Below, piece by piece: positions 8,156-44,452 of a stretch of DNA of 64,000 bases (position 1 is the stretch's first letter; every line of letters begins with the position of its first letter). This DNA comes from Entomortierella parvispora E1425 (lineage: Eukaryota; Fungi; Mortierellomycota). The notes under the pieces were generated by a model. That model saw only the letters and a list, made by a program, of their open reading frames with translations. It ran no database searches and was not told the origin of the DNA. A program made the position numbers and the translations under genes. The stretch spans positions 558,001-622,000 of the forward strand of contig BQFW01000009.1 of NCBI GenBank assembly GCA_020891255.1, in the 5' to 3' direction.

Positions 8156-11100
8156 GATGGCGGGATAGGTGAAGTATTTGGCAGAACGGATAATCGGGGG
8201 TTTGGGGGTCTTCTAATCGTTGATCTAGGGAGCAGTAAAGGAGGCGATGCAAAGTGTCAGTTGGGAGAGGGTCTGTTGCGGGATGAAAAGAAAGACAAAG
8301 AGAGAAAAAGAAGTAATGGGAAGGAGAGAAGAAAAATGTGAAAGAGAGGGAGGGAAGGAGTGATATAGCATAAATAGTGAAGCGCAGAAAGGGTGTAGCT
8401 ATTCAGGCGTAAGAAGGGATAGAACGCAAGAGGTGAATAGCCAAGAGAAGGTACTTCAAGGGAAGGCAACGCAACCAAGGGATCAAAAAGCGAACGAACG
8501 AGCGAAGGGCGACAGGGAGGCAGGGAGACCGGGAGGGGTGGGGGCCAGCAAGGGCCAAGAAGGGCCTTCAGGAGGATTCAAGGAGGAGGGAGGCGACGAA
8601 CAACCGATCCGGGTTTGGATTACAAAAATAAAACACGATTGAGGGGTGGACATGGTTCGTGGTCCTTTGCAACAGCAGTATGAAAAGAACATGAACATTG
8701 CATCCATATTCAATCGCAAGCGCTAATTGCAGACGCAGCGGATGTCAAAGGGTAAAGCACGGAGATGAAGTAGGACAAGGCAAGCTCAGGGCTCGGCACA
8801 GCTTTCTCATTCTTTCGCTGGTAGGTGGTTGCACCAAGGAAGTGTCGCAAAAAAAAAAAAAAAAAAAAAGAGCGTTTTTGTCTTGTACTTTCCCACAACT
8901 GTTTGTGGAATGTGTGGAGAAAGGGCAGACATGTTCTTGTTGACGGGTGCTGTTGGATGGAGTTTGTGTTGCTGTGGCATACCTGGGATATTGTAAATGA
9001 GATGGGGGCACAGACAACGCAGTGATATGTGAAATAGGGTGTCAATGAGTTTAAGCACGCACAGAGAAGGCAGGGAGTTGGAATGAAAGGAGGAAGAAAG
9101 AAAGAAGTCGATTTTGCTGAAGTGAGGCTGGAGGCGAAGAACGAACTATCAGTTGGGCTGGACTAAGGCAAAAGGGCGAGCAGGGTGCTTGTAGTGACTG
9201 GATTGCTGGTAATGACGATAATGGTGATGATGATGGGGCCGGATGTGCTCTGTGCGCCAAGAGAGAAGAGGGAGATGAAACAAATATGAGAGTGAGCGAG
9301 AGAGAGGGCGAGATCCAAGAGAAAGAAAGAGAAGCTGCTGCTGCTGCTGGGGGTTCTCAAGGGGGTTCGCAAGTGCGGAGACACAGGGACAAGGAGGAGA
9401 CAAGAAGGATGGAAGACGAAAGGGGAGGGGGGTTGATGAATGGAGAGGTATCTTGAGAAAGACAGGATCAGGGATGGAGCAAACGAAGGAGACGGTGTAG
9501 AGTGATATGGATGAATGGACGAATGAATAAATGAATGAGTGGATGTGGATGTACAGAACAAAGTCCTCCTGGAAGCGACCCCCACTTGCTGTGGGCAGGT
9601 AGGGATTGAGGGCCCAGGGCTGGATGGAGAGGATGATTACCACTGGAAACTTCTGTTTCTACTGCTCAGGTATCATGTTCATGTCAACAGGGGCAGTAAG
9701 AGGCTGTTCTCTTTTCGCCAAGTGGTCTTTCCATCCAGTGGTGACAATCAAGACGGCACAGGGCCCTCGCTTGATACCAGTTCCAAAGGGTGGTTTGCGC
9801 GATGTGGACAGGCTGCTTTGGGATCAGGTCCGCGAAATCCTTCCAAGCAGTGACCCCCATTCTCACCGAAAGGTCCTCTTCCTCTCGGTGGTGGTGGTGT
9901 TCGTGTTCCAGGAAAAGGGACGAGGGGTCGCACAAGGAGACCGATCCCAAGCAAGGGGAGGCACAGACACACAGACACACACACACAACACAAAAAAAAA
10001 TCTAGGCATTCAGCCAGAGAGCAACCTTGAAGCTCTTGGATCATTGATCATTGACCATCGACCCATCCCCTCCAATCGTTTCTAGTAGGTCCAGCTGTCT
10101 TTCTGCGACACCAGTGTCGAACTCCAGATACCGCACGTCAGCTTTGCTTCTGCAGCTCTAATTACTCTACTGCCTTCTGTCTGGAATTGACTTGGGCCCC
10201 TCATGCGTGATATACGGGTCACTGGGGGGTGGAGGGTTGCTCCTTCAAACACAAGATTCTATCCTTCTCCACCTTGTCAACGACGCCTCATTCATCCCTA
10301 TGGGCGAGGAGTCGTGACATGTAGCTTTTGGGGTAGATCTATCCCAAGACTTTATTTGCCCCGTGTCTCTCTCGCGCGGCGCCCAGCAAGGGGAGGCAGG
10401 AGGAGAGGAGGAAGAGAAAGGCAGAAGAAGACTCCCTTTCCTACCAAGAATAGTGACAATGGGAACGACAGGCAATCCATGACCCCTGGTTCCTCTGGTC
10501 GATTTTTCATGAGACTCTTTGCAGCCCCGTTCCTTTCTTTTTTTTTCCATTCATTATCTCCTTGCAATATCATGCAAAATCAAAAGGGGATGAAGGGTTT
10601 AAGCACTCAACACATGGCAAAAACAGACAAAAGGACTTGAGGGACGTACGTGTGCAAAAGCCTTGTACTGCAGGGTATGTTTGTACACCAGGGCAGGGGT
10701 CTTTTTTTTTTTTTTATTTTTTTTTTTCAAAGATGGAAGAGGCGCTTTTGACATCAGTTGGTGCTATCTTTTCTCTGCCCTTGCGGTCAGAACGACATGA
10801 GGAGTTTTGATCCGAGAATGTGTTTTGTCTTTATGCACAAACTGTGGTGTTTCCCTCCAGGAGATTCTTGTTCAAGACGGTGGCGCAAAGTCCGCATCTA
10901 TCACGCGAACACAAAACGAACTCTGACAAACGATCCAAGCACAGCGAGAGACTTCGATGGGCACTGGTGTTGTGGGCATGTGTTTTAAAGGGGTTGTCGG
11001 CTTGTGACCTGACGGGATGCTCCATGCTCTAAATGCAATCATAACATTTCACTGGATCGGTGCATTCTGCACTCCCGCACACAGCAAACACAACAAAAAC

Positions 11101-11753: not shown

Positions 11754-12992
11754 ATGTCCGACCAAACACCCACACCCTTTAGCCAGTTCTGCTTCTTCAA
11801 GAGCCTGTCCTACTCACTCTTTGAGGACGATTGGATCAACATGGTCGAGTCCTGGCAGTCTATGGTTGCGGTGAATGCACCTATGCCTGAGTTTGCCTTC
11901 AACCTTGTCCCTTTCTTCGCCAACGCTCCTCGCTTGTTGCCAGTATTCCACCGCTACCTAGGCTTTGCCGAGAAGGTAACACACCGTTTTGCACGTTGAT
12001 CCTGCTTTGGGGGATGGATCCATCTTTCCCTCTCCGTCACTGTCCTTCACAACAGACGTTCTCAGTTGCGTGGGAACACCGTTATTGCTCCCGGGTTCGC
12101 GTGACCCGGAGCTTGTTGCGGGGCTAGGAGTCACGTGCGGCCCGTGACAACTTCCATATTGGGACGCTAATCATCACCCATGTTCAATAATAGGACCAGG
12201 ATTTTCTGGCGACCATGACGACAGTGCTCATGTCGACTCCCCTATTGATCAAGGTCCAGCACATCCTCAAGTCTACAGATCTGTTTTTTGCGTATGTCGT
12301 GGCCCTCAAACTTGACAAGCCTTCGGCTTCGCACACTGAGGTCATGCAGTCGCTTCAGACTTTCCTCTCTGGCCTTCCCGAGCCTACGAGACTAGAGATT
12401 CTCAGAGTCTTTGCAGAGGAAGAAGCCTCGGATTCTATGGGTACGAATTTATTTTACTGCAGATTGTAGGATCCATACCTTTATGCTAAAATAATGGTTT
12501 CATCTTTTATTTCATCTAGGCCTCTCCACCTCGACACTTGACACCGCGCTGCAGCTGCTTCATGCTGATACCCAGCTCTACATTGATATCCTTTCGACCT
12601 TGCAACTCAACCAGACGCAGAACATGCCCTGGGATGCCATTGTCAGCAAGATCAAGGATCTTGTTTTGGCCAATAAGCCTCACGCCTGGGCCGGTGTCGA
12701 GCAGTTCCTCCAGAGTCTTCATTGGGGGCCACAGCAGGAGTCGACTGCTTCAGCTGCGCAGGAAGAAGAGGAAGAGAATGACGACATTGTGGAAATGATC
12801 GAAGGAGTCGACTATTACCCTGACGAGGAAGATGAGCAGGAGATCGGCTCTTTCCCAGAGGGCGAGGAGTATGATCAGCACTATGCCGCGTTCCTGCAGG
12901 ATGTTCAGGATATTCAGTCCGGCCGTGAGTCTTTGGACGACTTTTCAAAGCTGAGCGTCGTTGACAGTCGCCTAATTGTCGAGTCCTGCTAA
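11754..12992 (+). CDS. ~313-aa protein with three PAH-like amphipathic helical repeats and an acidic tail; exons 11754-11975, 12194-12440, 12520-12992
   Basis: Phase-compatible GT-AG introns 11976-12193 and 12441-12519. Repeats such as FAFNLVPFFANAPRLLPVFHRYL and LYIDILSTLQ...IVSKIKDLVLANKPHAWAGVEQFL resemble Sin3-type PAH ends. The gene model is firmer than the PAH call. Confidence 0.65.
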
Positions 12993-14055
12993 TCACTTGT
13001 GGGAGTGAACACCCAAACTCAAATCAAAAACCCCTACGCGAAAATCGCAATGCCATACTTTCAGTACCATTCAACCAAACACACAATCTCTGGGTCAAAG
13101 TCAAGCGATCAAAAACGACCAAGCTGTTCAACTACAATGGGACAGCAAGCAGCAATACAAGATCACCGCAATTACAACAACAACGTCAGACCAACTTCAA
13201 AAAAACAAAACAAAAAAAGACGCCCCTCGCTCCTCTGCAAAACGACTCACAATCTTCAGGATCCCAAAATTCTCGAATGGCACCTTCCTTGTCGCGAACA
13301 TCGCTATGAGGTGAACTGACAACTGTCGCCTTCTCCAAAAAAAAAACCTCCAACATATACCCAAACCTTTATCCTCTTGCTTTGTCTGTAGTTTTTTTGT
13401 CGTTTCTCATGTACCTTACATCTTGCTGTTTTTGCTTTGTTCTCCTTCTCGTTTGTACTTTAACCCAGAACCAAAAAAAATATATCCTTTTTACAAACCT
13501 TTGAGGAACTGATCTTGTAAAGGGTTATCGCAAATATCAAGGTTCAGGGTTCAAGCTTCTTGTTCTGTTGTGCTATAGCGTCAGAATTCATTGAGAAGAG
13601 ATGCATGGCTCTGGTTGTCGGAGAAGAGATAGATTGACAGAGCAATCTTCTGAGGTCCAAGATTAGATGGTGGTCCCGCAACAGAGCCTGAAAAGACTGA
13701 CGCGACTGAAGCGCAACATGCCCGACAGAGCAAGTCTGCATTTGCTTTTTTTGATCGTGTGCGTGTACCGTAACCGTTACATCGGGTCGGACAATCAAAA
13801 ACAACTGCAACCGAGAAAAAAAAAAACAGACCAAGATTTTTGGGCGTTCGTGAGTCTCAGGTCCCCTTTTCATTTTTTTTTGCTTACCTACAACTATAAA
13901 GCTCTTCTTCTTTTCTTGCAAGTGAAGAAGAAGGGGCCCCAGTTTTTTTTTTCTTGGTAGAGATGAATGCAGCTCGACTGAACCCCCGCATCTTTTTGAT
14001 AAAAAAAATGGTGTTCATGCATGATTGCGCACATAGAGGTGAGGGCGAGCGCGTT

Positions 14056-14094: not shown

Positions 14095-16756
14095 GGGTAC
14101 TGGCACAGGTACCTCTCTCAAAGCGAACAAAACACCTCAATTTTCCGCAAGAAGAATCCAACGAACTGAAGGGAAGGAAGGAAGAAACAAATGGGACAAA
14201 ATGGAAGATGACTAGACAAGATGAGCGAGAGAGGTACATGAAAGAAGAAAATAGATACAAATAGGGGTCTTTCCAGCCCTGCGCGCACCGCCGAAACCAC
14301 ATTCTGAGGTTGAGAGGGTTTACGACGAGAGCGTCAAGGGACGAGAGCGCGCGCAGCTTGGACAGAGTGATATGATTTGATCTCAACTGGCTCTCTGGTC
14401 TGTGAGTGTTGTGTTTTGGTGGCCAAAAGGCCAAAGAACTAAATTTGTTCCCTTCATCTGAAGGCTATGAGCCACCGAGACGGGAGTTCTGACGATGAGC
14501 AGTGAGTCGCAGCGAGCAGAGCCACAAGATACGGGGTCCGTAATAGACGAGAGGCTTTGTTCCCTTTCAATTTATCGTCATTGTCGTCCATACCACTTTG
14601 TCGTTTTCATAGTCATTATTCATCATCCATCGTCGTGGTCGAGGTATTCGTTTTTTTTTTTAAAAAAAAGACATCATCGTGCGTGAGAAGATTAGAAGCT
14701 CATTCCTCCTTTTGGCTCCAACTAGCCTTTGTCTCTGTTTTTGTTTGTGTATCACACCTGTAGTAAAATAAACAAAGGACGAGAGATTGCCTTGGCACAA
14801 CCCTTCCTGCATCCCCACAGTCTTTTTCTTCTCTCCTGTTGGTAGGGACCACCTTAGGTCTTCCACCAAACAAACAAACAGACAAACAAACAAAGAAGGG
14901 AAGCAAGACGATACGGCATCAGAAAATAATATCCGGCAACCTACCAAAGCGCCACAGGGCACCTCAATTCTTCCGCCCTCTTCATTTTGAGTCATATGTA
15001 AAATATGTTGGGGACAAGAACAAAGAAGGGCCTTGGGCGAGCAAAAGTTGTTTGTTTTTATTGACATCGAGATGGTCCCTCCCTCCCCCTTTTCTTAACT
15101 CGTGGGCTTTGGACCATGTTCTGGCGTCCTTTTAGTGGGTGTTTGTATGTGTGAGTTGGGTGGGTGGACGATAGCCTTGGAGACGGCGGCAGAAGAAAAA
15201 AAAATAAAAAAGAAAAGGACATTGAATCTTGTCCAGGGCGTCGCCGAAAGAGGAGGGTCTGTGTCCCAACCTTGGTCTTTGAATTCTTGATGTTTACCTC
15301 GATACCGCATCAAGAATGCGGACGATAACCAGCGTTGGGGAGAATGGACAAGCAGAAAAAAAAGAGAAAGAGAGGTCAAAAAGAGGCCCACATCCAAGGT
15401 GTGGCCCCAAGACGAACGCGAGAAACAAGATATTGAAACAAGACCGTTGTTGATTGTTGTCACGACATCCAATGGTCAGTGCTCCCATTCTTGGTGGGAC
15501 AGAACACAGAGTGTTGTCACCCTTTTGGGGAACGTTGCTGTGGAATTGAATTGCGTTGGGTTCAAGAGTTCTTTTTTCTTTTTCTCTGTCCTTCTTTCTT
15601 ATTACCGCTGATGAGACAGAGATACATAGACAGGTTCTTTCTTCTAATAGACACATGCACACGCTCTCCAAGAAGTAAAAATAAAGACACTTCAGAGGGA
15701 ACCGGATGGACATGGGTAAATGCAGGGTACTTTGCTCCCATATAGCAAGAGAGCTCAGGTCTAGAAGCTGATTCATAGGGTCAAGATGACCTAACGAACG
15801 TATTGGCTGTTGGGCTGGGGGAGCCAAACCACTGACTGGACCACCAGCTTTTTTTTTTACGAAGTCAGGACTACTTTATTTCCGAGGCGAAAGAACAAGC
15901 AATCACCTATCAGCAGCGGTCTTTTTAGGAAGAGTTTCAGTCCGTGGTAGAGGTGGTCATGACCAGTAAGTTGGCTACCTGGCTCCTTGAGGGTGGCTTT
16001 CTTCCAAGTGACTAATCATAGCATGCCGGCTGATTCGGTGCAGAAAAGAAACCTGCTCTGCAGGGCAGGGTAGCGCACATCTGTGAGGCGGGGAGAGCGA
16101 TCGAGATGATATGACTATGTTTGTTTGCAAGCAAGAGTGGAAGGGGAGATGAAAGCACAACCCGATACACTTAAAAACAGAGTCGTCTCGGTCGACACTG
16201 CCGAGAATAGGCAGCCAAGGGGCGAAGGGGATGCAAAAGTAACCGCCATGCCATGGGTGTCTGCCGTTCCGGGCTGGAGGTGGCCGGATCATGGATGCCA
16301 CCACCATCCCTCGTTGTCGAAAGTGTGCGCCCTGGTGGAACGGACGGGCAGACAGACAGCTCAGCTTGTGCACCCATCCTCCCGCTGGATGACCAGGCAA
16401 ACGAAGCGAAGCACAGAGGCTGCGAGCCCTGTGCTCGACGCACTGTTTTTCCTGCCTTCCCTCCGTTCCATTTCTTCGCCTTCCGTCTCTTTTTTTTCTT
16501 TTCCTCTTTTCTGTCTTGACCCCTCTTCTTTGCCCCTTCCCGTCATCTTTATTTTCATTTCTCTTTCTCTCTGTCCGTCCTATTTGATCATCCGCATCCT
16601 CTCAACCTTCCTTCATCGCTCCCATCGGCAATTCAACCTGCTTCCCTTGCGAATGAGCCCCGCCCTGCACTACTGACCATCCTTCCCCCCTTCCCACCCC
16701 CCGGTCTCATTTCACCACCCGCACTTTCCCTACCAAGAGACCTTTAATCTCTGCAT

Positions 16757-38246: not shown

Positions 38247-38714
38247 ATGATAATAGCATGCAAAGCCAGGCTCCTTTATTTTTATTGTTCACTTTTATTC
38301 TCATATTCTATCCACCATGTAATTTTATATACGCACCTTGTCAACGACACCATTGTCCCTCAATTTCACCTTACATACAAGCACCCTCTCACATCCATCC
38401 CTTTCAAAAAAGAAAATGAAGATATCAAGACCGACCAGGGTCCACCCAATTTGAAAAACGCGTCACTCAGCCTTTTTTTTTTTTTTTTTTTTTTTTTTGA
38501 TTTCTCGCAGCAACAACAGAGAGGACCCAAAAAGCGCAGTAAAATTTCTAAGCCACCGAGTCTCTTTTTTTTTTCTTTTTTTTTTCTGTCTGCGGCGTGG
38601 TGCAGGGCATCGTCGAAAGAGGCGTGGCTCTTTTTGTCTTTTTTTTTCTGGTTCCATTGTTCATTCCTTCCCTTAATCACATCCCTCCCTCCCTCCTTTC
38701 ATCCTATATACACA

Positions 38715-40211
38715 ATGGCTGTCCGTACGTAACACTCGCTACTCTTTCTAATGCAGGAACTCGGGATACATTCAGAGTGTTAAGCACATCCATTTCCCAA
38801 GACGGATCATTCATGGCTGCTTGATGAAATAGCGACGTCAAGGCTCAACCTAGAGCTTTGCTGGACAGACAGGCAGGGAGACGATCAGGGAACCCTTTTC
38901 TTTGACAGGAATGGAGAATGTCAACGTGGACACGTCCTCATACTGCCCGAGGACAGAGAGGAATGCATATACAGCCACTCGTTGGGAGAGTGACCGTGCT
39001 CCTTCCGAGGCTCCTACTTAGGCTCCTACTTAAGCAAACGAGTATTCTATCCTCGGTTGGACAGGCCGACGCCGCCTTTTTTGAATCCTTTTTTTTCTTT
39101 ACAGGAGTGATGTTTTGACGTTTCATCGCCTTGGAAAGGCTAAAGTCTCTGTGATAAACCTCACTTGAAAAGAACACCATGCTGACAGAATCTCCTTTGC
39201 CTCCCCTGTTGCCCCATAGGTGCTCAATTCGAAAACAACAACGAGATTGGCGTCTTTGCCATGCTCACTAACAGCTACTGCTTGGTCGCCGTCGGTGGTT
39301 CCGAGAACTTTTACAGGTAACCTATTTGACTGTCGTGCTTGAACATGCCCAATGCTTAATAATGACGGCTTCAATTGCTGGCCCTTTATTCTTTGTTTGC
39401 TTTGTCATCGTTTTTTTATATATTTTTTATGAAGAGCAACATCTGACCTTGGTCCATTTTTTTTAAACCCTTTTATCATGATAGTGTCTTTGAGGCCGAG
39501 TTGAAGGATGTCATCCCCGTTATCCACACCAGCATTGCTGGCACCCGTATCATTGGACGTTTGTGTGTCGGTAACCGTCACGGTCTTTTGGTGCCCTCGA
39601 CCACGACAGATCAGGAGTTGCAACATTTGAGAAACTCTCTCCCAGATTCAGTGGCGATTCAGCGTGTGGAGGAGCGACTCTCGGCGTTGGGTAACGTGAT
39701 TGCCTGCAATGATTACGTTGCGTTGGTGCACCCCGATATCGACAGGGAGACGGAGGAGATCATTGCTGATGTCCTCAAGGTCGAGGTTTTCCGTCAGACC
39801 ATTGCTGATAACGTCCTCGTGGGCTCTTACTGTGCTTTGAGCAACCAGGGTGGTTTGGTGAGTGCGATTTTTTGCGTCTTTCTATTCTGTGAGACTACAG
39901 GACAAATGTCAGATTTGCTAACCATCATATTCACTTCTCTTTCGCAATCACAGGTCCACCCCCGTACCTCTATTCAGGATCAGGATGAGTTGTCATCATT
40001 GCTTCAGGTTCCCTTGGTTGCCGGTACCGTTAACCGTGGTTCGGATGTGATTGGTGCTGGTTTGTTGGTCAACGACTGGTGCGCGTTTGCTGGTTTGGAC
40101 ACTACCTCCACCGAGTTGTCAGTGATTGAGAGCATCTTCAAGCTCCAGGACAACGGCCCCAGCGCCATTGTCGAGGATATGCGTGATGCCCTCGTTGACT
40201 CCTACGTTTAA
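38715..40211 (+). CDS. TIF6: Translation initiation factor 6; exons 38715-38724, 39220-39316, 39485-39857, 39954-40211
   Basis: Spliced [42 protein letters not shown]; [12 protein letters not shown]; [25 protein letters not shown]. Confidence 0.97.
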
Positions 40212-40457
40212 ATTACTCTCCCTTCACCTTTAAACACGCCGACCATTCCCTATCCCCATCTTTCCCCACTTGGCATGAGATAAAAAAACTACCATTCAAA
40301 AAAATCTGACATATTAGACCATTGGTTTGTTTCTTGACTCCACTTTTTCACCTCTTCTCTGTTTTCATATATTTTTTTCATTTTACCTTTTACTTTTACC
40401 ATAGTCAACGACAGGACTTTTTGATTAAAAAAAAGGAACATGCTGTCATTGTTCACC

Positions 40458-40488
<31 letters not shown>

Positions 40489-40744
40489 CTGAGAAAAATG
40501 CGGTGGTGACAGGCGAGACTCACTACGACGTGGTAGTTGGCAAACATTGCACCATGTCCTGCACACCCCCTCGTATCAATCACGCGTTATTGACGCGTTT
40601 GTCCTTTATTTCTTTGCTGATTGAGCAGACATCCTCTTCCCATGCTGGGTAACCAAAGGGACAGCAGCTAAGTCAGGTCAAAGGACAAGAGATGCTTGAT
40701 GTGCAAAGTGCAGGGGCCTTTGACGATGGAACTGGCAAAGCTGA

Positions 40745-40970
40745 TATATAAGCAACTAAGATCCACAGAAGCGTGCTCCTTCTCCTTTCTCTCCTTTCTC
40801 TCATTTCTACCTCAAATTCCACAGTACAGGTAAGTCTTCTATTCCAAGTCCATAAACTCACTCAAGAGGTGCTCGTTTGACTGTCTTGATGTTTGTTTGT
40901 TCTAACTGGGGGGAACAACAGGCAAGCTATGTTCCGCTATTATCAGCTATACAACTAACGCTCTCGTCAG
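40745..40970 (+). promoter_or_regulatory. TATA box, CT-rich leader and 5'-UTR intron upstream of the PilV-like ORF
   Basis: TATATAA 40745-40751; pyrimidine tract ~40776-40810; donor GTAAGT 40830; branch CTAAC at 40902 and 40955; acceptors CAG ending 40921 and 40970. Confidence 0.65.
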
Positions 40971-40989
40971 TATTTCAAAACAAATAACG

Positions 40990-41517
40990 ATGCGTTTATG
41001 TTTGCTAATGGCAGAGTTGATAGTTACTTCTGCTGCAGTTGCAGCACCTGTCCAGTTCAGATTATCATCTGAAAACAATCAGGATGTGACTATACTCGGT
41101 GAGGTCTCTATCAGCGGCAGCCTCCAAGTGTCGGGTCGCATTGCGACTGATGAGTTTCTCCAAATCAATGGAGTTTCTGTTGAAGGTGACGCCTGCTCTT
41201 CGAATGGGCTTATTGGAAAAACTGGCGAAGGACAGATCATCTCCTGCGAAGAGAGCGTGTGGCGCAACCCCAATCCAAAATTCACCACAACAGTCCGAGA
41301 GGCCACTAGTCAACCAATATATCGTTTTCCGTCGGCCACGGTAGCATGTGCCTCTAACGAGCAAGTCGTTGGAGGAGGAGGATGGTGTACCCAGCCGCCC
41401 GGTTATATTTGGGTAATTGCGTCCCGACCGCATTCGAACGGCTGGGAGGTGTTATGTGATGGAGGTATGAAACACACATGGGGTACGGCAACTGCATACG
41501 CGATTTGTGCCTCGTAG
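40990..41517 (+). CDS. Secreted 175-aa protein resembling the C-terminal part of the bacterial shufflon pilus-tip adhesin PilV (end of constant region + one variable-type domain); candidate horizontal transfer
   Basis: Residues 49-91 GRIATDEFLQINGVSVEGDACSSNGLIGKTGEGQIISCEESVW fit the PilV constant-region end (G-R-x-x-T-x-E-Y/F-L-Q...C-S-x-N-G-L-V/I-G...G-x-I-L/I-S-C-x-x-x-x-W). Cys-rich tail CASNEQVVGGGGWC...SRP..NGW...ATAYAIC. Signal-peptide-like N-terminus; intronless CDS. Confidence 0.8.
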   Translation: MRLCLLMAELIVTSAAVAAPVQFRLSSENNQDVTILGEVSISGSLQVSGRIATDEFLQINGVSVEGDACSSNGLIGKTGEGQIISCEESVWRNPNPKFTTTVREATSQPIYRFPSATVACASNEQVVGGGGWCTQPPGYIWVIASRPHSNGWEVLCDGGMKHTWGTATAYAICAS

Positions 41518-41765
41518 AACAAAGCATCGTCTCCAGCAATCCTTTTTGCAGCCACTCGTAAAAACCGCCGGGCCACGATGGTGACAACTCGGGTCAATCG
41601 ATTCATTTGAGCAGCACAAACACTCTCAATCAACTCTAACGGACGTGATCAGTCCATTGCCCCACCAGATAGCAAATCCTCAACCCAACATTTCGTCCAG
41701 TAACTCGAATACACATACTTTACCACCTTGAATCCTAGAATATCTTGTCCTCTCTTTGTCCATAG

Positions 41766-42198
41766 GGGCTATGCACCTTGATGGAAATAAAAGGTTGCAT
41801 TTAATCGGTTGACAGATCCAACTACAGCGATGATATGGCCAGCATGGCATGCTTGATTTGTGGACTCTTGCTCACACCGTCTATGGGATATTTGGGGGAG
41901 GGTAAAGTCAGACTGAGATTTAAATTGCAGACCGTGTCTATCACGCGATACTGACACGGTTCGTTCTACCCATCTCTTTCCTCCATCTCGCTTCACCCTA
42001 GTTCCATTGGTCTGCTCCCAGTTGTTACAGCGCAAGTGGTCGGTTTGAACGTCTTGTCAGGAACCTTGGCAATCCTGTACTGTGGAGAGGTGCTTGAAAA
42101 CCAGCAACACGGACAATAGCAAGATCGTTGACCTAGGAGCCTTTTTTGTCGCGTTGATCCGTTTACAATTGAACAAAAGGCTGTTTGCAATCGTTTGA
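41766..42198 (+). pseudogene. Relic of a third MCT-type MFS paralog (degraded exons 2 and 3 only)
   Basis: MASMACL..WTLAHT..VYGIFGGG then GTAAAG donor (41902); acceptor 42001 then SIGLLPVVTAQVVGLNVLSGTLAILYCGEVL, QHGQ*, GAFFVALIRLQLNKRLFAIV*. Collinear with the neighbouring paralogs, with the same phase-2 intron, deletions and frameshifts. Confidence 0.85.
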
Positions 42199-42872
42199 TA
42201 ATACACAGCAGGTAATGTGAGTAGAGAAGGGATTCCATAATATGACACATACCTACAGGTAAAAGTAGTGTGGAGAGGGTGTACCCGGCTTAGGGCCATA
42301 GAACATGGAGAACAGGGGCTGCTGGACGATACCGGGGATACTCTGAGTCCATCCAAACTTTCCTCGCATCAAGGTTGGGGTTGATACAACCATGTGGGAT
42401 GAATTACCGTCCTCTGTCGGGAGAAGTTGAGCCGTGGTGAAGCCTGAACGAATGAATAAAACGCGTGGCTGTCAGACTCAACAAAAAAAAAAAGAGCATT
42501 TAATCCCTCGGATATTCGGGTGGCGGTTCCCAGAGAAGTCCTAACAACACCTACCGCGTGATCCAAGAGAGGGGTCAGTCGTTGATTTCGTCAGTTCAAG
42601 ATCATGATAGAAATGGAAGGAGAGAGAGGGGAGGAGCGAAAAAAGGAGGTGGACCAACCAAGCGCAAGTACAAGGGCCCGCAAAAAGAAGAGCAACGAAG
42701 AAAGAACCACCCACCAGAGGTGCCGGCTCAACGATCCCTCCTGAGACACTTTTTTTTTGGCGGACCCTGCCCCAGGAGAGGGTTCTCTTCCTTCATTATT
42801 GCCCCTCCTTCATACGTCTTCCTTCTCTCTTTCGACTAAACTTTCAGCCTCCCATCCTCGTCGTCCATTCCC

Positions 42873-44452
42873 ATGCCAGCGTTACTCGCCTCCAATCCTA
42901 GCTCCGAAGGAATAGATGTTGTTGACGATGCAAGCGCTTTTGAAGTCAACGTGGAGGCAGCCTCAATCAAGACTGAGCGGGAACAGGAGGAATCTGTAGA
43001 GGACTTTCCCGAGGGTGGCTTTGGCTGGTGGGTGGTAGTCGCCTCCTTTGCCATCAACTTTTTCACACTTGGACTCACCTCGACCTTTGGGGTGTACCAA
43101 GCTCATTTCTTGGCCGTCCACGCCTTTCACAACGCTTCAGACACCTCCATTTCCTGGGTGGGCCCCATAGCTTCTGGCTGTGTCTTCCTTCCAGGTCCAT
43201 TTATTGAACCTCTCATGTCTGTCTTTGGTCTCAAACCGTTGGTGTTCATCGGGATACTAGCTTGTTCTGTGGCTTTTATTCTCGCCAGTTTTGCACGCGA
43301 ACTCTGGGAGCTCCATATGACGCAGGGGTTCCTATTTGGCATTGGAGCAGGTCTTTGTTACTTGAGCACCGTATCACTAGCATCTCAATATTTTGACAGG
43401 AAGCGCGGCCTGGCGAATGGTATCTCAGTCGCAGGAGCAGGCATTGGGACGTTAGTCATGGCGCCATTGACGCATGAGATGATTGCAAGAGTGGGCATTC
43501 CATGGTGTCAACGGATCGTGGGGATCTGTATGTTTGGATGCTTGATGGCGGTGTTGCCGCTGATCCGACCCAGATTCAAGTTATTGGAGAGAGGAAGTAA
43601 CGCCAGCGGACATGAATACGGTGCAGTCGTACGACGACCGTACTTTGATTGGAGATTGCTCATCATCCCGCGGTTCAATTGGTTGTGCCTCTTTGCATTC
43701 ACGATGGCGTTTGGTAAGGGACAGATCAGATTCCCCTTTGTCGTGCACTGTCCAGGTAATGGTCAATGCTGACTGTTCGACTGACGTAACTGCTGCTCTC
43801 CGTTTTTTTTTTTTAGGATTTTTGGTACCTGTCTTCATGATCCCCCCTTACAGTCGATTTTATTTACAGCAACTTCCTGGGACAGGAGCCGATTTGCTCA
43901 GTCTCTATGCTGCCGTCAATGCCATCTCCAGAGTCCTCGTTGGCCTCGTCTCGGATCGCGTAGGCAGAACCAACAGTTTATTCATTTGCACGTTCATGTG
44001 TGGGGTGTCTTGTTTGGCTATCTGGTCCTTCGCGTCCACTGTGGGAATCATGGCGCTGTTTGTTTCATTTTACGGCTTTTTCAGCGGCGGGTAAGTGGAT
44101 GAAAGACTAGCAACTCGTTACATAGGCCATTGACTGTTTCGCCTTGCTGACACAACGTTCCATTGCTTCCTTGTCGTTTTTTGGGGGAAAAAGTCTGACG
44201 AGTATGATACCTGCTGTAACGGCCCAGGTGGTAGGCGTTGAGAAGCTACCAGGGGCCCTCGGGATTATCTACTTTGCTCAGATCTTGGGCTATGTCTTGG
44301 GGTCACCGATCGCGAGCACCATCCGACGATCTGGTGATCGACACAATCCTGTAGGTTCTATTATTTGGGCGGGAACCGCACCCTTGATCGCTTCACTCTT
44401 TGTTCTGGTGATTCGGTTCCAGACGAACAGACGATTGTTCGCGTTTGTGTGA
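42873..44452 (+). CDS. MFS monocarboxylate-transporter family protein (MCT/Mch-like), copy 1; exons 42873-43713, 43817-44090, 44194-44452
   Basis: FPEGGFGWWVVVASF, SQYFDRKRGLANGI, GLVSDRVGRTN; 12-TM hydrophobic pattern. Confidence 0.9.

Follow-up and report, generated by a model that had tools for sequence, protein, structure and literature searches.

The window, by which we mean the whole 64-kb stretch of DNA analysed here, contains a single copy of a PilV-like open reading frame (ORF) with a gene for eIF-6 upstream (PF01912, E 1.5e-65; eIF6 below) and two MFS_1 ORFs downstream. An intronless 175-aa ORF between eIF6 and MFS genes had been described in the initial annotation of this DNA, and the ORF list and Pfam searches on the neighbours bear this out; residues 49–91 and the four cysteines downstream of them were likewise identical to the quotation given there. 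The eIF6 and MFS genes flanking the ORF carry introns, and the GC content of the ORF was ~0.50, like that of its flanks. Based on the best matches of eIF6, which came from Mortierella, Podila, Haplosporangium and Linnemannia, the window belongs to the Mortierellaceae. The parts of the ORF are listed in Table 1; the later cysteines of its product are C120, C133, C157 and C173.

Table 1. Features of the PilV-like locus, in window coordinates.
Feature	Position	Strand	Remarks
Candidate 5'-UTR intron (GTAAGT ... CTAAC ... CAG)	40829..40970	+	Sequence reading only
PilV-derived CDS, intronless	40990..41517	+	ATG start, 175 aa plus stop; from the ORF list
Predicted signal peptide, ~residues 1–18	40990..41043	+	Predicted cleavage directly before A-P-V; assigned by eye
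Last beta-rung of the PilV constant region and junction motif, residues 25–91	41062..41262	+	Includes C69 and C86
C-E-E-S-V-W codons	41245..41262	+	Position of the 19-bp sfx site (C-Q-S-G-x-W) in IncI plasmids
Four-cysteine beta-sandwich domain, residues 92–175	41263..41514	+	Homologue of a PilV variable (adhesin) cassette

The sole Pfam-A match of the product was Shufflon_N (PF04917), which scored 32.1 bits (E 1.1e-7; gathering score 27.5), and the profile match to PilV that had been suggested as a check was thus obtained. Residues 26–87 cover positions 262–322 of the 324 profile positions, the extreme end of the PilV constant region, and profile positions 1–261 have no counterpart in the 175-aa protein. 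The type IV prepilin leader and the hydrophobic N-terminal helix are absent, and the N-terminus reads as a short hydrophobic signal of eukaryotic type. A tblastn search against 72,556 plasmids matched 2555 records (top E 2e-22), mostly conjugative plasmids of Escherichia and Salmonella, and in 568 of the 2555 at least 80% of the query was covered at one place. The best plasmid matches were annotated as 'shufflon system plasmid conjugative transfer pilus tip adhesin PilV'. In pSL476_91 (IncI-gamma/K1) the gene order was pilin, transglycosylase, prepilin peptidase, the matched pilV and integrase, and BLASTP against this IncI-gamma PilV aligned residues 25–173 with 38% identity (E 1e-29) and all six cysteines; for residues 92–175 the match is with its expressed C-terminus.

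In R64 (NC_005014) the similarity fell into two pieces. Residues 27–92 matched the annotated 475-aa PilV where its constant region ends (38% identity, E 9e-13), and residues 82–173 matched a separate silent cassette adjoining rci (37% identity, E 5e-14), which was placed by its position beside rci in this record and not by cassette letter (A, A', B, B', C, C', D'). The fungal protein is thus equivalent to the PilV junction joined, in one fixed arrangement, to a cassette of one particular type. The R64 motif cited in the initial annotation was found in the same record, and the homology that it had claimed, to the end of the PilV constant region and one variable cassette, holds by Pfam, tblastn, BLASTP and the R64 comparison. 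Orphan cassette ORFs of Enterobacter and E. coli are also among the relatives, and bacterial Shufflon_N proteins were nearest in feature-based and shape-based Atlas searches and in AlphaFold DB clusters. Searches with the ORF product in PHROGs, NCBIfam and PDB sequences gave nothing useful, a word-index protein search with the single query gave no match, and its profile version (8000 candidates scored) added little. Taken over several independent lines, the likeness to PilV is far above chance.

We then compared the DNA at the joint with that of a working shufflon. R64 (locus L017) has exactly seven copies of GTGCCAATCCGGTNNNTGG between 22900 and 25400, four on one strand and three on the other, which mark the R64 shufflon, and its 19-bp sfx core is the coding sequence for C-Q-S-G-x-W at the joint of the PilV constant and variable regions. 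At this position the ORF matches 9 of the 16 specified bases, and the values among the fungal genes are 9–12 of 16; the peptide there is C-E-E-S-V-W in the ORF and C-Q-S-G-K-W in L. gamsii. A DNA-level sfx relic was considered as a sign of a shufflon-bearing donor and rejected, as 9–12 of 16 bases are largely explained by the codon constraint of the peptide. The C-x-x-G-x-W motif is also kept by bacterial metagenome relatives (P0012, P0015, P0017) in a comparison that dealt with the motif and not with their shufflon status, and it hence looks structural and is no proof of a shufflon-bearing donor. By its place in the reading frame, this stretch of codons may still mark the decayed position of an sfx site. 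Allowing up to 3 mismatches, no sfx-like site was found in the window; homopolymers are the only inverted repeats close to the ORF, and no bacterial genes, Rci or pil genes lie near it, the neighbours being eIF6 and MFS.

Fungal relatives came out on top in an exhaustive phmmer search of 1.84 billion representatives, which gave 323 matches at E ≤1e-3; they were followed by bacterial PilV-type proteins of 460–600 aa, matched at their C-termini. Names were looked up for 20 of the best 150 of the 323 matches. The top fungal matches were hypothetical proteins of Linnemannia gamsii, Mortierella sp. AM989, Entomortierella beljakovae, Haplosporangium sp., Mortierella sp. AD094, Mortierella sp. GBA30 and Jimgerdemannia flammicorona (Endogonales), the last of which bears the automatic database name 'Bacterial shufflon protein N-terminal domain-containing protein'. 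The family is thereby known from at least five further Mortierellaceae plus Jimgerdemannia, and the fungal matches that were named came only from these two groups. The capture looks old and is common to several Mortierellaceae genera and Jimgerdemannia, and not private to the E. parvispora genome.

At the fungal loci inspected, in Linnemannia, Mortierella, Entomortierella and Jimgerdemannia, the neighbours were eukaryotic (among them SACS/BTB and a zinc-finger protein; HlyIII and SPB4 helicase; EFR3 and ARPC5). Synteny among the fungal copies was looked for and rejected: neighbours differ genus by genus, and none of the inspected loci is syntenic with that of the window ORF. Coding density is low on the Jimgerdemannia contig, which bears three consecutive copies. 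These PilV-like copies of J. flammicorona (contig L002) lie within 7 kb at 9571–10125, 12761–13321 and ~15836–16336 (minus strand); the third is weaker (E 4e-11) and has no gene call. The first 6 kb of the L002 locus have an unusually strong GC skew of ~-0.42.

The full-length fungal members are 172–186 aa long, and their hydrophobic N-terminus leads into a conserved [AT]-P-[IV]. We read this N-terminus as a predicted signal peptide, cleaved directly before [AT]-P-[IV]. In E. beljakovae the ORF of KAF9436788 (L016:7965-8780) reaches an ATG at L016:7965, 12 codons upstream of the annotated start; the annotated start seems too late, and the upstream extension would add a predicted signal peptide of the kind found in the family. 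The fungal members have kept every cysteine as well as the G-G-G-G and N-G-W motifs, and the prepilin leader and the body of the constant region are absent from all fungal relatives seen. The proposed replacement of the pilin N-terminus by a signal peptide agrees with this pattern, in that the pilin part is gone and a hydrophobic, signal-peptide-like start is conserved across the fungal relatives. The E. beljakovae copy retains a longer run of beta-solenoid-like repeats, equivalent to Shufflon_N positions 187–322, which suggests that the captured gene at first included more of the constant region and was trimmed later. The initial annotation had envisaged acquisition of only the junction and the variable domain; this describes the window ORF correctly, but the ancestor probably had more, given what E. 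beljakovae has kept.

A tree was calculated from the junction and the C-terminal domain (45 rows, 128 columns, LG+C20) and was left unrooted. The seven fungal rows formed one clade with an ultrafast bootstrap of 88 and an SH-aLRT of 59, and were a single clade in 92% of the bootstrap trees; within it, Jimgerdemannia was sister to the Mortierellaceae (94/87). The patchy occurrence of fungal matches among bacterial sequences that had been anticipated for a transferred gene was thus found, in the form of one fungal clade with a narrow named distribution. As the bacterial backbone is a polytomy, the donor cannot be named. A Burkholderiales MAG homologue (L006) fell in a separate, well-supported group and was less similar to the fungal proteins than IncI PilV. 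The suggestion of a Burkholderiaceae-related endobacterium as donor consequently finds no support, and no contradiction either, with the backbone a polytomy and the Burkholderiales homologue not nearest. A degenerate DNA pattern for G-G-G-G-x-C ... P-x-x-N-G-W retrieved 11 bacterial genome loci, six of them true homologues, and none of these six was nearer than IncI PilV. As the tree is unrooted and has no clear bacterial sister, the direction of transfer was judged from distribution and architecture. Both favour transfer from bacteria to fungi: bacterial members number in the hundreds to thousands and fungal ones are few, and the module is the tail of a larger protein known only in bacteria, with a narrow fungal range.

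AlphaFold2, run with a 68-row alignment, predicted an all-beta model with a mean pLDDT of 89.3, exceeding 90 from about residue 40 on and throughout residues 92–175. Foldseek gave no significant match in the PDB, and there were no solved structures with a sequence relation. Model residues 97–175 (window 41278–41514) superposed on the PCSK9 C-terminal module with a Z of 8.5 (rmsd 1.9 Å over 65 residues, 23% identity) and on resistin with a Z of 6.6, and R-type pyocin fibre feet and H-type lectins were lower structural matches (Z 3.8–4.8). The PCSK9 module and resistin have no relation to the ORF product at the sequence level and resemble it in fold only, and since the Z values are near the best scores that the tool reports for unrelated models, they provide a lead only. 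The model may hint at a resistin-like, disulfide-rich beta-sandwich for a class of PilV cassette that has no solved structure.

In AlphaFold DB clusters, pilins as well as collagen-like and YadA-like proteins terminate in this C-terminal domain, and at bacterial genome loci it occurs in small proteins of ~160–170 aa with their own signal peptides. Found at the ends of many bacterial proteins and in small secreted ones, it behaves as a general tip or binding module. In MAGs of Blastochloris and Sulfurirhabdus (L012 and L008), small stand-alone proteins carry the four-cysteine domain with little or no PilV junction; their tblastn matches were limited to query residues 107–175 and 133–174.

Sequencing data were available as X1, the probable source sample, X2, a second isolate with the same organism label that is ~90% identical, and X3, a run of X1's sample. 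One 4.8-kb Logan contig of X2 spans 40702–44200, that is, the ORF and the MFS gene, and in X1 these two also lie on one Logan contig. Compared with window positions 40700–41700, the X2 contig has two indels only, at 40751 and 41604, and the ORF is free of them; part of the candidate 5'-UTR intron is swapped for unlike sequence in X2. The placement of the ORF in a true fungal chromosome, as originally claimed, is supported by its eIF6 and MFS neighbours and by the X1 and X2 contigs that join it to MFS. Around eIF6 there is an inverted pair of homopolymers, a poly(T) of ~26 at 38473–38498 and a poly(A) of ~30 at 40457–40486. The Logan contigs of X1 and X2 end at or just past this poly(A), so no contig links eIF6 to the ORF.

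No run was listed as RNA. X3, labelled 'DNA?', is RNA-like, its contigs skipping GT..AG introns at 39315–39482 and 39857–39952 (eIF6) and at 43713–43815 (MFS). Its depth was 367 over eIF6, 3–8 over MFS and 0 over the ORF, where contigs show presence and not absence; between eIF6 and MFS the difference in depth was ~50-fold. The candidate 5'-UTR intron is likewise uncovered by RNA. A TATA-like element ahead of the ORF (~40744–40751) has two substitutions and an insertion in X2, and residue 9, in the hydrophobic core of the signal, is Glu in the window isolate and Ala in X2. The PilV-derived gene may be expressed conditionally or be little used. Over the first 95 codons the window isolate and X2 differ by 13 changed and 8 silent codons, a ratio within one species that points to only moderate constraint; seven of the changed codons lie in the signal peptide. 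Codons 22–95 have 6 changed and 6 silent, for a dN/dS of roughly 0.3. Between genera dN/dS was 0.17–0.35 where computable, with silent sites saturated, and for the Jimgerdemannia tandem pair it was 0.60. On these figures the PilV-derived fungal family is under constraint yet fast-evolving.

An assembly artefact, or bacterial contamination fused to fungal DNA, might be suspected because the nearest non-fungal relatives of the protein are all bacterial and because the contigs of X1 and X2 are interrupted between eIF6 and the ORF at the poly(A). We give this reading next to no credence. Contamination and chimeric assembly were set aside on finding the ORF and MFS on one contig both in X1 and in the independent, diverged X2; the composition is like that of the flanks, nearby bacterial genes, sfx sites and pil genes are lacking, and the signal peptide and shortened module are common to six other fungal assemblies at loci with eukaryotic neighbours. 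The X2 contig together with these relatives among eukaryotic genes makes a contaminating or chimeric join very unlikely, and the reading is close to refuted. A silent relic, that is, an old xenolog unused or marginally used whose frame is open by chance or under weak constraint, would be in keeping with the zero depth of X3 over the ORF with both neighbours covered, with the altered TATA-like element in X2, with the excess of changed over silent codons between the isolates and with the dN/dS of the tandem pair. We consider it unlikely, as the frame is intact and free of indels at ~10% nucleotide divergence, genera already saturated at silent sites still share the six cysteines and the glycine and tryptophan motifs, the predicted signal peptide and cleavage motif are conserved and several paralogues have been retained; moreover, the signal peptide accounts for most of the changes from one isolate to the other, and the codons behind it show the lower ratio given above.

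We think it probable instead that this Mortierellaceae gene stems from that of the bacterial type IVb minor pilin PilV and that its product is secreted and acts as a lectin for bacterial surface glycans. A fungal lineage would have captured the gene of PilV, the tip adhesin of conjugative thin pili. What it has kept is the final rung of the constant region, a presumably disulfide-bonded junction motif and a single, fixed adhesin cassette; the pilin N-terminus is gone, as are recombination sites and recombinase, and a eukaryotic signal peptide would have been added. The homology, the fungal location, the single fungal clade and the loss of domains are shown by the comparisons above. The capture would be older than the split of several Mortierellaceae genera and either common to, or passed to, the Endogonales (Jimgerdemannia), and the family would then have spread to different loci by duplication. 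The product would be secreted as a soluble, disulfide-stabilised beta-sandwich and might bind LPS core-type glycans as PilV cassettes do, serving as a lectin in encounters between fungus and bacterium. PilV cassettes decide, via LPS core sugars, which bacterial cell the conjugative pilus holds. C-terminal segments of PilV bind LPS as GST fusions, and the R64 variants recognise defined core disaccharides (PMC9045228, PMC13729200). With an identity of only 38%, the binding specificity of PilV is not transferable to the fungal protein. The target of the secreted protein could also lie elsewhere than in bacterial LPS, for instance in cell walls of fungi or plants or on the surface of another organism, or the protein could be effector-like. 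This would accord with the presence of the C-terminal domain in many non-PilV bacterial proteins, some of them small and secreted, with the fast evolution of the family and with the best solved-structure matches, since PCSK9 modules and resistin bind proteins and not sugars. We judge it improbable: LPS core sugars are the only experimentally defined ligands of this domain class (PMC9045228, PMC13729200), and the structural matches are near the background level of the tool.

Building on the reading as a secreted lectin, we tentatively raise an idea that we hold to be possible and rather doubtful, namely that secreted PilV-derived lectins are retained in Mortierellaceae and Endogonales as a small family that diversifies, in which gene duplication would replace the shufflon as the source of binding variety. 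If true, such a family would recognise specific LPS cores to recognise, recruit or restrain bacteria, including endohyphal partners, and would be a eukaryotic pattern-recognition tool made from the bacteria's own device for partner recognition. Mortierellaceae and Endogonales are two fungal lineages noted for intimate bacterial partners. A PilV module off the pilus, behind a predicted secretion signal and long kept in both, is an easily testable candidate for the recognition of bacteria by early-diverging fungi. It also brings a class of adhesins to the list of genes that fungi have taken from bacteria, which are mostly enzymes. The fungal proteins are small, presumably soluble and naturally stand-alone versions of a domain without a solved structure.

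A full-text literature search found no paper linking shufflon, PilV or PF04917 to Mortierella, Mucoromycota or fungal gene transfer, and the text and accessible supplements of Ciach et al. 2024 (PMC11291939) do not mention any of these three terms. According to that study, Mortierellomycota gained genes from bacteria, transfer was followed by domain loss, and signal peptides are enriched in xenologs (33% versus 7.7% of the proteome). The xenologs of early-diverging fungi described there provide the same setting, from which the PilV-derived family differs in being a pilus adhesin module and not an enzyme or NOD-like receptor. It is a known adhesin module acquired by a well-known process; the architecture and the kingdom are new.

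The closest known system is the PilV of IncI1 and IncI2 thin pili (R64, TP114; PF04917). Within residues 25–91, which match the end of the constant region, the fungal protein has the same motif, G-R-x-x-T-x-E-[FY]-L-Q ... C-S-x-N-G-L ... S-C-x-x-x-x-W, and its residues 92–175 match one cassette type; over the two parts the identity is 37–38%, with all six cysteines aligned. Based on this homology, residues 25–175 would be the part of PilV that binds LPS core sugars (PMC9045228, PMC13729200). In contrast to PilV, the protein has no prepilin leader, N-terminal helix or main body of the constant region, and its locus has no sfx sites, Rci or pil operon; it combines a single fixed cassette with a predicted eukaryotic signal peptide on a fungal chromosome, and membership in a pilus is impossible. 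Bacterial stand-alone and fibre-tip proteins, including PilX-like pilins, share C ... G-G-G-G-x-C ... P-x-x-N-G-W ... C-D ... C at the extreme C-terminus. Some of the stand-alone ones, of ~160–170 aa and with a signal peptide, resemble the fungal proteins in architecture, but most of these bacterial proteins lack the Shufflon_N junction kept in the fungi and they are less similar to the fungal family than IncI PilV.
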